From NCBI GenBank assembly GCA_033442325.1, contig JAWQFM010000005.1:1009058-1073057 (forward strand): a stretch of DNA of 64,000 bases. The letters run 5' to 3'. This stretch comes from Salpingoeca rosetta. Its lineage: Eukaryota; Protista; Choanoflagellata. Below, one piece after another: positions 30,707 through 36,700 of this stretch (the first letter of the stretch is position 1; each line of letters begins with the position of its first letter). Made by a program: the position numbers and the translations under genes. The notes under the pieces are model-generated. The model made no database searches and was not told where the DNA came from. It worked only from the letters and a program-made list of their open reading frames with translations.

Positions 30707-33700
30707 CTACACTTCAGAATAACACTTCTGGCTAGCTGTCTTGACAATGGCCTTCTTCTTGTTCCGCACCGACCGCTGGAGGTGGCGAAGCGTATCTGCA
30801 TGGCGAGGAGCGGGGTGGTGGTTGTGGATGTGAGGCAAACTGGTGGCGAGGGTTCGTGGCAAGCACACAAACAAACAACACACACACACACACACACACA
30901 CACACACACACACAATCACACACACACACAATCACACACACACACACACACACAAATCATGTCATCTCACAGGCTGGTTTCGACGTGGATGCCGCTGGCT
31001 TCTGGTTGAGAGAGATTACGACGCCCGCATCGTGCGGGAGTTCAAGTTGAGAACTCCCCTCGCGTGGCCGGTCAAACGACACCAGCCCTTGCTCCCGTGC
31101 AGTCTCCAGCAACCCTGGCAAGTTCTGTAAACACAGCACAATTCGGATGAGGGGTGAGGCGCTGCGTACACGAAGCCTCACACCCACCCACCCACAAACC
31201 CACACCCACCCACCCACCCACCCACCCACACACACACACACACACACACACACACGCATGCACGCATGCACGCGCGCGCATATTCCTCCGCCCCCACCTC
31301 AATGACACCCTGCGCCGTCGCTACGGCATCAAGCGCTGCAAACGTCATCGGTGGAGGTTTGCCATCCTCATGGCCGCGCGCACGTCCGTTGCTTGCACTC
31401 GAGTGCTGTTCGCCATCACTGGCTGTAGGAGAGGCCAGCAGATCAGCAAGCGTGTGCAGCTGCGCATCGAGCCAGCGCGCCGCCGCCTTCTCCGTATTGG
31501 ATGACGTGGACGCAATCGGCTGGTGGCGAGCACGTGTTGGGGTAAGAGTGAGCATGGGCTTGCCACAGCCACTGCTGGTGCAGAGCATGCTTGGCTCACA
31601 TGCATTTTGTGCGCGTGGTCTACACGCAACACAGCTGCGCAAATCACGCACATGCACACGCACGCATACACATGCACACACGCACACACATGCACATCTA
31701 CCTTTGCCAGGAGGTCATCGATGAGGAAGCTGCGGCGGGCGGCTTCCGTTGAGGATGAAGTGGTCGTGTTGGTCGTGTTGGTCGTGTTGGTCGTGTTGGT
31801 GGTGGTGGTGGTGGTGGTGGCTGCTGCGTTCGCAGACATGTCGCTCGTCTCCTGCACTTGGGGCCGCACAAGCGACAACCTGCAGCCCGCGTGCACGCAT
31901 TTTGGTTGGGAGGGAGAGGGAACAGACAGACAGACAGACAGACAGACAGACAGACAGACAGACAGACAGACAGACACACACACACACACACACACACAGA
32001 CACACACACACACACCACGAGTGTGTTGCGCGTGAAGGGAGCAGAGCGCGTGAGGTGATGTTACGTGACGCAAACAAAGAAGCAAGAACGCAATAACATT
32101 TCCCGTCACGGTGCCAAACAACCCAAGTCAAACAAAAACAAACACAGACACAGCAAAGGAAAAACAGGCACGCGCAACAAAGAAAGGGAATTCAGACACT
32201 CCCAGAGAGGTTTAAAGACGGGGGTACCCACGCTGCGTAATCTGCGGCGGACGTGAGCGCCTGCGCTTCGTCCACGTCGATGAGAACACTCAGCACCTCC
32301 TCCACCGCCCGGCGATCGCGCCGCGTCATCCTGTATGGCGCAGTAGCAAAGGAAAGAGGAGGAGGAGGACGAGGAGGAGGAGGAGGAGGCAATTTGGAAT
32401 TGGGGAGCAGAAGGAAGGGTGTTGGCGTTGGTTGATGGCGAGAGGAGGTACAAACAACACCACCAACGCCAACGAATGCATGCTGTGTGTACTTGTGTGA
32501 ACGTACTGGGTGCGTCGTGATGAGGGCTGACGAAGGAACTTCGTGCGTAGTTCAGTCTCCTGTGAGCAGGAATGGAAGGGGGAAACGTATGAGAGGCAGA
32601 GAGACAGTGCGCACATGAGACTATACAACTTTCGCCCACTTACACTCGCTCACAAACAAACGCGCGCGCGCACACACACACACACACACACACACACACA
32701 CTCGCTCACAAACACACACACACACACACACACACGTGCGTATGCACCTGGCGATCTGCTTTTGAGATGACGCGTGACCTGCTGCGGATCTGTCTGTCCT
32801 GGCGAGACACGGAGGAGTTGGAGGAGCGCATTGCAACACCCGATGTTGCATCATGGCTGCCATTCGACACCGCCGCTGATGACGATGGTTTGAAGATGAA
32901 CGTGTCGTCATCGTAATCCCCAACCGCATCCGCCTCGCCGTCGCCGCCCATCTCCTCTGCATGAGCATGTGTGAGATTTGCGAGTGAGAAAGCATGTGCG
33001 CATGAACCGGGTGGCATTCAAACGTGGTGTGCATCAAAGCCGCCCCCAACACCGCAAACACAACACCACGCCGCTCTCGCCAGGAATGCAGCACCCACCT
33101 GGGTGCCTGATTCTGTCGAGCTGTGCCTGGAGCCGCATGCGCTTGGCGGTGTAGATGGCCTCCACCTGTTTGCGGTGCAGCAGCTCCTCCGCATCGAGAA
33201 TGCGCAGGAAGTTGGACAGCTCGGGCGCACTGAACGCCATCCAGTCAACGTCTGCACGCGCGACACGACAGCATGTCAATGCAAGATGACACAGGGTGGC
33301 GCAGAAGACGAAATGCACATGTGCGCGTCGTGCATGTGAGCGGTCAACAATTGGGGGGGGGGGCATTTCGCTCAGTTGCATCCGCACGTTCACAACAGTC
33401 ATGACCAGCACAACAGTTCATGAGCCGGGCCACTTTACATCAACTCTCGAGCACATGTGTGTGTGTGTGTGTGTGTGTGTGTGTGTGTGTGTGTGTGTGT
33501 GTGTGTGTGTGTGTGTGTGTGTGTGTGTGTGTGTGTGTGTGTGTGTGTGTGGCGTGATGTGTGTTGCTTTACGTCTGCAAGTGCATGTGGATGCTTGATG
33601 TGCGATATAATTGGATGTGCTGTATCATGCACACACCCACACCCCAAACATGCGCCGGCGCTGTGTTCATGCTTGACGGTCTTCTCATCCTCCTCCCCAT

Positions 33701-36700
33701 CCCTTCGGTTCTGACCCGCCGCCTAACCCATCAGTTCGATCACGCATTCGTGGAAAGCACTTCCATGGTACGCCCCCTTGCACATGCTGCCACGTGTGCC
33801 ACTCTTTCCCACACACACACACACACACACACACACACACACACACTCTCTCTCTCTCTGAGATTTGCGAGTGAGAAAGCATGTGCGCATGAACCGGGTG
33901 GCATTCAAACGTGGTGTGCATCAAAGCCGCCCCCAACACCGCAAACACAACACCACGCCGCTCTCGCCAGGAATGCAGCACCCACCTGGGTGCCTGATTC
34001 TGTCGAGCTGTGCCTGGAGCCGCATGCGCTTGGCGGTGTAGATGGCCTCCACCTGTTTGCGGTGCAGCAGCTCCTCCGCATCGAGAATGCGCAGGAAGTT
34101 GGACAGCTCGGGCGCACTGAACGCCATCCAGTCAACGTCTGCACGCGCGACACGACAGCATGTCAATGCAAGATGACACAGGGTGGCGCAGAAGACGAAA
34201 TGCACATGTGCGCGTCGTGCATGTGAGCGGTCAACAATTGGGGGGGGGGGCATTTCGCTCAGTTGCATCCGCACGTTCACAACAGTCATGACCAGCACAA
34301 CAGTTCATGAGCCGGGCCACTTTACATCAACTCTCGAGCACATGTGTGTGTGTGTGTGTGTGTGTGTGTGTGTGTGTGTGTGTGTGTGTGTGTGTGTGTG
34401 TGTGTGTGTGTGTGTGTGTGTGTGTGTGTGTGTGTGTGTGTGTGTGTGACAAGTGTGTGTACAGCCACTGACTCAGCTCTGGGCGTGCGGTGACGTCTGC
34501 ATTTGGATGGCGGCGGATCAACGTCGACGCCGTCGCACTCATCTGCCAACCACCAACCACGCGACCCATGAGAAAGGTGTGTGTGTGTGTGTGTGTGTGT
34601 GTGTGTGTGTGTGTGTGTGTGTGTGTGTGTGTGTGTGTGTGTGTGTGTGTGTGTGTGTCATCACCACGGGTGCCATTGCAATCTCACTGCACGCCCAGCG
34701 CCAACACCACCCCACTCACCGTGCTGAAGGCGGTCCCCGGCTGCGACTTGATGGTGTCCGACTGGGTCAACAGCGCCGGCATCGTGTTCATGTGCAGCGA
34801 TGCACCGCGCTTGATCGTCCCTGCGTCGCCACGACTGCCACCATCGCCACGACTGCCATCATCGCCAGTCATATTGGTGTTATTGCTGGTGTTGGTGGTG
34901 TTGCTGGTGTTACCACCGCTGTGGGTGTTGGCTGGCGGCGGTGGCTGTGAGGCCAGTGTGCTGGCTGCACTGCCCCACACGAGCGTGCTGTACGTTGACA
35001 GCGCCTCGGGCTCAATCTCAATCACATCGCTCTGGTCAGCAGACACGCAGGCAGGATGGACGTGGGGTGGGTGGGTGAAGAGCGAGCACGTCGTGGCGGG
35101 TGATGGGAGGTGAGTACAAGTGGGAGAGCCGCAACTGTGGGCAAATGAGCCAAGGAAGGTTTGACTGGTGGAAGAAGATGCCTGGCAAGGGCGTCCCTTA
35201 AACAGATGCACATCTCGACCGTGTAAAACCACCATAACAACAACAACACAGCACAACAACATACAGCGCACAGCGCACAGCACACGCTTGACGATAGTGT
35301 GTGCAGTGAAGCATGAGGGCAGCGCACCAGGGTGAGGTCTGTGAGCTGCGTGACGAGGGACGCGCGGTCGCTGAGACGGGAAATGGTCATTGCGCGCTGC
35401 GCCCATCGCGATGACGGCGAAGACGCCCGGCCCTGCGCACAAACCCGCACATCAGCTCATGAGGGGAAACGCACACACACACACACATGCACACGCACAC
35501 ACACATACACACACATACACGCACGCATACACACACATGCATGCATACACAAGCAAGCAAGCGAGCCAGGAAATGTGCACACCACGCACGCAACACCACG
35601 GCAGCACCAGCCCTCCAATAACAAGAAAGCAACAAGCAGTCATGCTGTGCTGTCCCTTCCCCCTCTCCCCCGACGGTGATTGGGCAGTGGCGTACCTTGA
35701 GCTGCAGCGTGCCAGTGCTATAGCTACTGTCGTTGCTGTCGCCACTGCCGTTGCTGTTGCTGCTGCTGCGCCTGCGTGTGTGTGCGTGTGGTCTGCCCGC
35801 ATCGCGGCGGCGAGAGGGCGTCAGCACTTCGCTTCGGCCACGTCGCAGTGGGACTTCATTTGCTGATGGTGACGCTGTTGACGATGACGATGCTGTTGCA
35901 TGGTGGCTGATTGTGTCGGGTGCATGTGGAGGAGTGGGTCCTTGTTCCGTTGACAACTTGCGCAGTTTTTCCTTCACTTCATCAAACCCTTTGTTTGGAC
36001 CTGGACATACACAAATACACACAGCCAATCCAGCCACCACACAACGGTGCGGCAGCCCAAAGGCACAACAAGTGAGCGCCTCACAAAGGACTCATACCCC
36101 CGCCCAGCGAGCAGCGTGGCACGTGTACCGAAACACACACACGCACACATGTACACACACACACACGCACACACACACACGCACGCCCCACCATTGTCTT
36201 TCGAGACAGGACGCATGCACACACACATGTACATGAGCACGCAAGCGTACCGAACGACTCCTGCATGAGTGCATCTGCGGCCTTGTTTGTGATGTACACG
36301 GATTCCGCACGTGCCCCTATCGGCGCCCAGCACATGTGCACACGACACGCGTGGGTGAGCGGCACTTGCAAAGGATTACCCAGCACATCAACGTACCATC
36401 CACCTGCGCACGCTGAACCACATGGCGTGACAACCCATGAACCCGCACACAAACACCCCCCCCCCCACACACACACACACCCCCCCCACACACACACACA
36501 CAAACACACACACAAACACACACACAAACACACACAGGCATACGCACACAAACACACAAACACACATAGGCATACGCACACACGCACACACAAACACACA
36601 TAGGCATACGCACACACGCACACGCACACACACACAAACACACAAACACACACACACAAACACACAAACACACACAACCCCCCCCCCCACACTCAGGCAT

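Follow-up and report, generated by a model that had tools for sequence, protein, structure and literature searches.

Within a stretch of 64,000 nt from the choanoflagellate Salpingoeca rosetta (contig JAWQFM010000005.1 of assembly GCA_033442325.1; genome size 55.4 Mb), which we call the window, a gene on the minus strand encodes a RASSF-type SARAH domain in the interior of a long protein. The gene model comprises 20 exons over about 8 kb, running from an ATG at 38825 to a TAG at 30709..30707, with AG/GT sites at all introns, consistent phases and a single stop. The coding sequence totals 2883 nt, and the protein has 960 residues if both of the SARAH exons present in the assembly are included, or 909 residues if only one is. 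The SARAH domain starts near residue 533, and approximately 326 residues, from seven coding exons, follow the last SARAH exon. From the N-terminus onwards, the protein very probably consists of a Costars-like domain, a disordered linker, a short helical motif (containing TLVWG), the RASSF-type SARAH domain, a second disordered linker, a Costars domain and a basic tail.

The minus-strand exon 33251..33099 matches the Pfam model Nore1-SARAH (PF16517) over its full length (positions 1-40/40) with a score of 57.1 bits and an E-value of 1.6e-15; the gathering cut-off of this model is 21 bits. No second Pfam family, Mst1_SARAH included, matches the exon at E<=10. When the whole 55.4-Mb genome was scanned in six frames with PF16517, only three places were found, two in the window and one on contig 6, which indicates that the match is not a product of chance. 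The exon is preceded by an AG acceptor, and its 51-residue translation is followed by one extra base and then a GTGGGT donor (phase 1). The nearest solved structures are the RASSF5 SARAH chains 4LGD_E and 4OH8_B, from complexes with MST2 and MST1, respectively. On profile and structural matches, the assignment as a SARAH domain of the RASSF1/5 subtype is solid. A sequence-only reading of this DNA had described the exon as a RASSF1/5-type SARAH domain ending in a phase-1 GT donor and had proposed a Nore1-SARAH profile search as a check; that search is positive, and the splice-site reading of 33251..33099 confirms the donor.

To find relatives, 1.84 billion representative proteins were searched exhaustively by HMMER with the 51-residue SARAH exon as query, which returned 16 matches at E<=1e-3. 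The four best matches stand apart. In most of the others, which are RASSF proteins or pieces of them, SARAH lies at the C-terminal end or close to it (residues 232-276 of 282 in P0009 and 389-435 of 441 in P0010, for instance). P0001 is a fragment from a Tara scaffold. P0002 is a 696-residue protein from Hartaetosiga balthica with SARAH at 384-432, from a transcript whose open reading frame (ORF) is marked complete. P0003 is Monosiga brevicollis XP_001746728.1 (A9V1U5), 790 residues with SARAH at 419-464, annotated as an uncharacterised 'SARAH domain-containing protein'. P0004, a full-length Trinity ORF from a Choanoeca flexa transcript, has 675 residues and SARAH at 339-385. A further match, P0017 from Hartaetosiga gracilis, also comes from a transcript ORF marked complete. 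Among the matches of this representative search, no S. rosetta database protein is 100% identical to the SARAH exon. Pfam identifies both Nore1-SARAH and Costars (PF14705) in P0002, P0003 and P0004, and the precomputed domains of P0017 list both as well. In these four proteins the polypeptide continues for 250-330 residues past SARAH.

We aligned the orthologues (alignment A1) and ran the resulting profile on the stop-free minus-strand pieces of the window. Nine colinear matches were obtained on eight exons, from 38140 to 31002 and in profile order, with both SARAH copies at 76 bits. The same colinearity is seen motif by motif with tblastn: AARWxxxxLRRL, STRxRRHRRRI, TLVWG, RHPxxxxxRPEL, YDDDT, RSxVI[ST] and the basic tail follow one another in the window as in the relatives. 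Based on these matches, the window gene is an orthologue of a choanoflagellate family conserved in M. brevicollis, H. balthica, H. gracilis and C. flexa, and the exons after SARAH belong to the same protein. A Tara Oceans metagenome scaffold, L024 (1802 bp), shows the same exon order, with the TLVWG exon, a single SARAH exon of 78% identity and the YDDDT/RSRVIT exon; the gene thus also occurs in uncultured marine choanoflagellate-like organisms. All close homologues are from choanoflagellates, which bears out the earlier view of the host as a unicellular relative of animals. Word-index protein searches with A1 and with residues 318-440 of P0002 returned only sequences already known, candidates probably being swamped by low-complexity words, and a look-alike search of the ESM Atlas with P0004 gave no usable match. 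So far, the Costars-SARAH-Costars layout has been seen in choanoflagellates only.

The exons and the spacer between the duplicated units are listed below in the direction of transcription. Exons of the window were searched one by one, with the full-length orthologues serving as proxies for the spliced protein.

38777..38825, minus strand: exon 1, hand model with proposed start ATG at 38825-38823; GT donor and phase fit exon 2.
38568..38656, minus strand: exon 2, AG/GT sites; weak match to family profile positions 57-74.
38278..38380, minus strand: exon 3, low-complexity linker; AG/GT sites and consistent phase.
38044..38139, minus strand: exon 4, coding for the first helix in the N-terminal Costars-like domain; family HMM 101-127 at 13.9 bits, and 54% identity to residues 109-136 of M. 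brevicollis P0003 (tblastn).
37826..37881, minus strand: exon 5, middle of the N-terminal Costars-like domain; AG/GT sites and phase, very weak profile match, colinear with the orthologues.
37590..37662, minus strand: exon 6, end of the N-terminal Costars-like domain; family HMM 147-166, and 50% identity to P0003 150-169 (tblastn).
36765..37103, minus strand: exon 7, conserved basic motif followed by Gln/Thr/Ala-rich low complexity; family HMM 194-226 at 13 bits, and 62% identity to P0017 residues 167-195 (tblastn).
35696..36000, minus strand: exon 8, Ser-rich low-complexity linker; AG/GT sites and phase, no Pfam domain.
35328..35432, minus strand: exon 9, start of the conserved helical motif preceding SARAH; AG/GT sites and phase, no Pfam domain.
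34720..35031, minus strand: exon 10, motif DVIxIxxxxLSxYxTLVWG followed by low complexity; family HMM 320-364 at 15.4 bits, and 55% identity to P0002 residues 322-343 (tblastn).
34473..34542, minus strand: exon 11, RHPxxxxxARPEL lead-in to SARAH; tblastn matches to P0002 360-383 and P0017 366-383; the donor GTCAGT is in phase 1, and the codon split there reads AAC (Asn), in agreement with RPELNVDW of the orthologues.
33986..34138, minus strand: SARAH exon S1, upstream copy, 153 nt, phase 1 in and 1 out; PF16517 at 57.1 bits and family HMM at 76.3 bits; identical to S2.
33552..33858, no strand: spacer of 307 bp between the duplicated units, 99% identical to contig 20 707236-707542.
33099..33251, minus strand: SARAH exon S2, downstream copy, the one quoted in the sequence-only reading; PF16517 at 57.1 bits, E 1.6e-15.
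32748..32956, minus strand: exon A, acidic YDDDTFIFK and conserved RSRSRVIS motifs; family HMM 492-548, colinear with the exon of Tara scaffold L024.
32507..32559, minus strand: exon B, AG acceptor and GTACGT donor; phase fits exon C.
32228..32330, minus strand: exon C, AG/GT sites and phase.
31702..31851, minus strand: exon D, Thr/Asn-rich with conserved FLIDDLLAK at its end; 55% identity to P0002 540-559.
31298..31519, minus strand: exon E, coding for the first half of Costars at the C-terminus (includes MTFAALDAV); family HMM 614-640, colinear with Costars of P0002 570-660.
30971..31124, minus strand: exon F, coding for the second half of Costars at the C-terminus (includes VVISL); Costars at 12.4 bits (E 0.18), family HMM at 15.1 bits, and 62% identity to P0017 residues 625-648 (tblastn).
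30707..30795, minus strand: exon G, basic C-terminal tail and TAG 30709..30707; AG acceptor, fitting phase and a single stop; the tail resembles LRQSVRRGKKKKRGIV of P0002.

Several of the earlier statements about this gene can be judged from the model. The sequence-only reading held that coding exons continue after SARAH to about 30707, and the seven exons A-G, with canonical AG/GT sites and consistent phases up to the TAG, bear this out. It also held that SARAH is internal and would have been overturned by a transcript ending at the SARAH exon and including an RA domain; the orthologue ORFs run 250-330 residues further. Its description of the upstream exons as low-complexity is right for the linkers and wrong for the far-upstream exons, which encode the Costars-like domain.

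Three short basic motifs recur throughout the family: STRGRRHRRRI after the N-terminal domain (window 37101-37040), R-x-R-S-x-V-I-[ST] after SARAH (window 32790-32760), which resembles a basophilic-kinase site, and a stretch of Lys and Arg residues in the C-terminal tail (window 30793-30740). These motifs could be sites of phosphorylation, nuclear localisation or lipid/actin binding.

The gene is flanked by two neighbours. Upstream, at about 39377-41400 on the plus strand, lies an adenosine-deaminase-like gene with the motifs HAEVLARRAF and LHLYVSHAPCE, which suggest an ADAT1-like tRNA deaminase; this opposite-strand neighbour bounds the 5' end of the SARAH gene. Downstream, at window 28676-30401 on the minus strand, the ORF list contains a SAM-dependent methyltransferase-like gene, recognised by eye from the motif VVDLGSGSGRDCYALAKLVG, with roughly 300 bp between its 5' end and the stop codon of the SARAH gene.

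The C-terminal Costars domain is most clearly seen in the orthologues, where it exceeds the Pfam gathering score of 24 bits: 34.2 bits in P0002, 32.8 in P0003 and 38.6 in P0004. In the window this domain is split by the intron between exons E and F and was scored per exon; exon F reaches a sub-threshold 12.4 bits and exon E gives no match. A second Costars stretch is found by Pfam in P0003 and P0004. When the N- and C-terminal domains of the family were compared with each other by profile-profile alignment (hhalign), they matched with a probability of 96.9% and an E-value of 1.6e-10. The AlphaFold2 model of P0002 contains confident modules (pLDDT 70-85) at residues 72-170 and 562-660, both with the order H-E-H-H-E-E, and one long helix at 392-450 that corresponds to SARAH; the rest is disordered save for three short helices at 288-339. 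The top Foldseek matches of this model in the PDB are human ABRACL/HSPC280 (2L2O, TM by target 0.69) and ABRA ABD2 (2KRH, 0.59), both with probability 1.00 and E-values of 0.04-0.07 for the whole 696-residue query, which is an orthologue rather than the window protein. On this orthologue model, the non-typical winged-helix fold of the ABRACL and ABRA ABD2 type is present. By profile comparison and the predicted fold, the N-terminal domain is a diverged copy of Costars.

Costars domains also occur elsewhere in the genome. A six-frame scan gave 13 matches clustered on contigs 1, 7 and 15 (contig 1, 1316524-1323979; contig 7, 1328077-1329759; contig 15, 171224-171412 and 677647-678161), indicating that Costars is expanded and often multi-copy in S. 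rosetta. The Costars exons of the window gave no match at E<=1 in that scan. Both Dictyostelium Costars and human ABRACL change the ratio of F- to G-actin, are located at the leading edge and interact with cofilin, and the C-terminal domain of ABRA is an actin-binding domain; an association with actin or cofilin is known for these three proteins only (PMC7922284). The two Costars domains had gone unnoticed in the sequence-only reading, and their presence shifts the likely biology towards a link with actin.

We asked whether the protein contains a Ras-association (RA) domain. With PF00788, the whole-genome six-frame scan gave no match in the window, and none was found in the orthologues. Nor does Pfam detect RA, C1, WW or kinase domains in the scanned window exons or in the orthologues. 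When the family was compared with RASSF by hhalign, the 66 columns that aligned correspond to SARAH, with nothing aligned upstream, and in the AlphaFold2 model of P0002 the segment that separates the N-terminal domain from SARAH has no fold containing strands. The exon scans, the RA search and the profile comparison agree with the earlier statement that RA, C1, WW and kinase domains are missing. By eye, TGTLQLK and SDVIEIEP in exons 8-10 resemble RA strands, and a vestigial RA domain was considered there; we rejected it, as hhalign aligned SARAH only and Pfam detected no RA. This region aligns instead with the helical motif conserved in the orthologues. The ordinary RASSF of S. rosetta is a separate gene on contig 6 (1988398-1989122), in which RA exons (GETFFLPK.., RKFALFER.., PLALQLLWG..) are followed by the SARAH exon EFHWEEFSLAELENFCTILDREEQ. 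Just downstream of it there is approximately 1 kb of N flanked by (GA)n. Given the missing RA domain and the separate RA- and SARAH-containing gene, the window gene is, by its predicted domains, not a RASSF.

The range 33099-34138, which the sequence-only reading had assigned to a SARAH domain, holds two identical SARAH exons (34138..33986 and 33251..33099), a duplication missed there. They lie in units, 33859-34438 and 32972-33551, that repeat with a period of 887 bp. As each exon is 153 nt long with phase 1 on both sides, splicing S1 to S2 stays in frame. The second copy is either a very recent (templated-insertion) duplication or an assembly error. We consider it an even question whether it is an artefact and the real gene has a single SARAH exon. 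The two units share 580 bp at 100% identity, and one of the duplication junctions falls inside a (CA)n tract. The spacer is nearly identical to a sequence on contig 20 that has (GA)n(GT)n on one side and, on the other, a 100-N gap followed by (CA)n. Furthermore, SARAH is single in all four orthologous proteins and between the flanking exons of the closely related Tara scaffold L024. These points favour an artefact. Against it, at the other junction (33859) unique intron sequence meets (GA)n with no shared repeat, which better fits a real template switch or a chimeric clone; three positions distinguish the spacer from the contig 20 copy; and the window sequence is contiguous, without N. One of the two placements of the spacer, in the window or on contig 20, may be an assembly error.

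The protein was compared with its closest known counterparts. With the C-terminal RASSFs (RASSF1-6, including Nore1/RASSF5, and Drosophila dRASSF), it shares the Pfam Nore1-SARAH domain, a near-identical VxWxAFSxPELxNFLRIL motif and most of the interface residues described below. Unlike them, it has neither RA nor C1, and its SARAH is internal and flanked by Costars. Like Hippo/MST kinases and Salvador/WW45, it has a SARAH helix, which in those proteins serves antiparallel dimerisation within the Hippo module; unlike them, it lacks kinase and WW domains, and its SARAH is of the RASSF subtype and internal rather than C-terminal. The orthologue model is most similar to members of the Costars family (Dictyostelium Costars, ABRACL and ABRA/STARS ABD2), matching 2L2O and 2KRH best. 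Known Costars proteins, however, are single-domain (about 80 residues) or have one C-terminal copy, as in ABRA, and none has been described with SARAH or with two copies flanking a dimerisation helix. The M. brevicollis orthologue A9V1U5 has the same domain order and conserved motifs, with a 57% identical SARAH; it differs in having one SARAH, less low complexity (790 residues) and automatic annotation only, and we found no functional study of it. Full-text literature searches gave no description of a Costars and SARAH architecture, nor of SARAH together with choanoflagellate species. The gene combines known domains in an undescribed way and is a candidate for a fourth class of SARAH protein.

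What might the SARAH domain bind? Twelve residues of RASSF5, computed as hot spots, dominate its SARAH interface with MST1 (PMC4089488). In a gapless alignment, ten of the 12 are identical in the window SARAH (W369, L377, L381, L384, E387, E388, V395, Y399, L406 and L410), and F372 and F380 of RASSF5 are likewise identical. A Hippo kinase SARAH, identified by its Mst1_SARAH match, is encoded on contig 35. The conserved hot spots and the Hippo SARAH in the same genome make an atypical Hippo-kinase adaptor, as suggested by the sequence-only reading, plausible.

By analogy with RASSF5 and ABRA, we favour a SARAH-mediated partner of Hippo with two actin/cofilin-linked modules, coupling the kinase and the cytoskeleton, and regard this reading as having about an even chance of being correct. 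The SARAH helix would pair antiparallel either with itself or with the SARAH of Hippo/MST, in the manner of RASSF5 and MST1/2. Both winged-helix Costars modules would bind the actin system, as the ABRA C-terminal domain binds actin and ABRACL/Costars act in cofilin-driven turnover. The protein would then place the Hippo kinase on the actin cytoskeleton or make the kinase responsive to it. If the second SARAH copy is a real duplication, two tandem in-frame SARAH helices would be present.

Several observations weigh against this reading. At the interface, two hot spots are changed in the window SARAH (I374 to Ala and I392 to Arg), and K398 of RASSF5, which hydrogen-bonds E458 of MST1, is Ile. 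ABRACL by itself left actin polymerisation unaltered in vitro (PMC7922284), and actin binding by Costars is thus not a given. The N-terminal domain scores below the Costars cut-off in all four orthologues (13-18 bits, profile positions 1-56). The AlphaFold2 model of P0002 has low overall confidence (mean pLDDT 48.7, from four sequences). The S. rosetta exon model is built on splice-site logic and orthology, and the start of exon 1 is a proposal. In addition, since SARAH domains can homodimerise, the protein may have a role unrelated to Hippo.

This last point leads to the main alternative, an actin regulator in which SARAH serves homodimerisation alone, giving four Costars modules per dimer and no link to Hippo. 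We regard it as possible, though on the unlikely side. SARAH domains of both MST and RASSF can homodimerise (PMC4089488), the family has a polar residue at position 392, where RASSF5 has a hydrophobic hot spot, and the other multi-Costars loci in the genome make multivalent Costars appear to be a theme of the lineage. The window SARAH, however, is closer to RASSF5 SARAH, which prefers heterodimers with MST, than to a generic coiled coil; the heterodimer hot spots are largely identical; and the genome encodes a Hippo SARAH. In another alternative, which we consider improbable, the protein is a competitor for Hippo, or sequesters it, by occupying the Hippo SARAH instead of RASSF or Salvador, and thereby tunes Hippo, with the Costars domains serving only to localise or regulate it. 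The RASSF-type interface residues are conserved, and RASSF and Sav compete for the Hpo SARAH in animals (PMC1828611), but the observations fit a scaffold as well as a competitor. Finally, an ordinary RASSF with an overlooked RA domain, or a separate gene formed by the post-SARAH exons, is largely refuted and very improbable: short exons and long low-complexity linkers do hamper domain detection, but the six-frame scan, hhalign and the orthologue model all lack RA, the canonical RASSF sits on contig 6, complete orthologous transcripts carry the downstream Costars on the same polypeptide, and the family HMM is colinear across the window.

Returning to the favoured Hippo-actin coupling, we tentatively extend it to a wider proposal, which we hold to be somewhat doubtful: the family may form a fourth SARAH class beside Hippo/MST, Salvador and RASSF, coupling Hippo to actin/cofilin through Costars, possibly with tandem SARAH in S. 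rosetta. If this is true, the family would provide a direct link from the cytoskeleton to Hippo, or the reverse, that animals reach by other means, and tandem SARAH helices could engage two partners, or pack against one another by folding back.

The functions of Hippo signalling in close relatives of animals give this question its context. In Capsaspora, Hippo kinases regulate actomyosin contractility and cell packing, not proliferation (PMC10959527). In S. rosetta, knockouts of warts produce giant rosettes, whereas knockouts of hippo leave rosette size unchanged; SARAH and RASSF proteins are unmentioned in that work (bioRxiv 10.1101/2024.07.13.603360). The gene described here is amenable to knockout by published methods. 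If it is merely a dimeric actin regulator, it would be a modest addition to the Costars family. As a conserved choanoflagellate protein in which two actin-linked domains accompany a Hippo-binding helix of the RASSF type, it is a concrete candidate for a Hippo-actin link. It would widen the known range of SARAH architectures, and it bears on how the mechanical or cytoskeletal state of the cell feeds into Hippo signalling and on the role of Hippo before animals.

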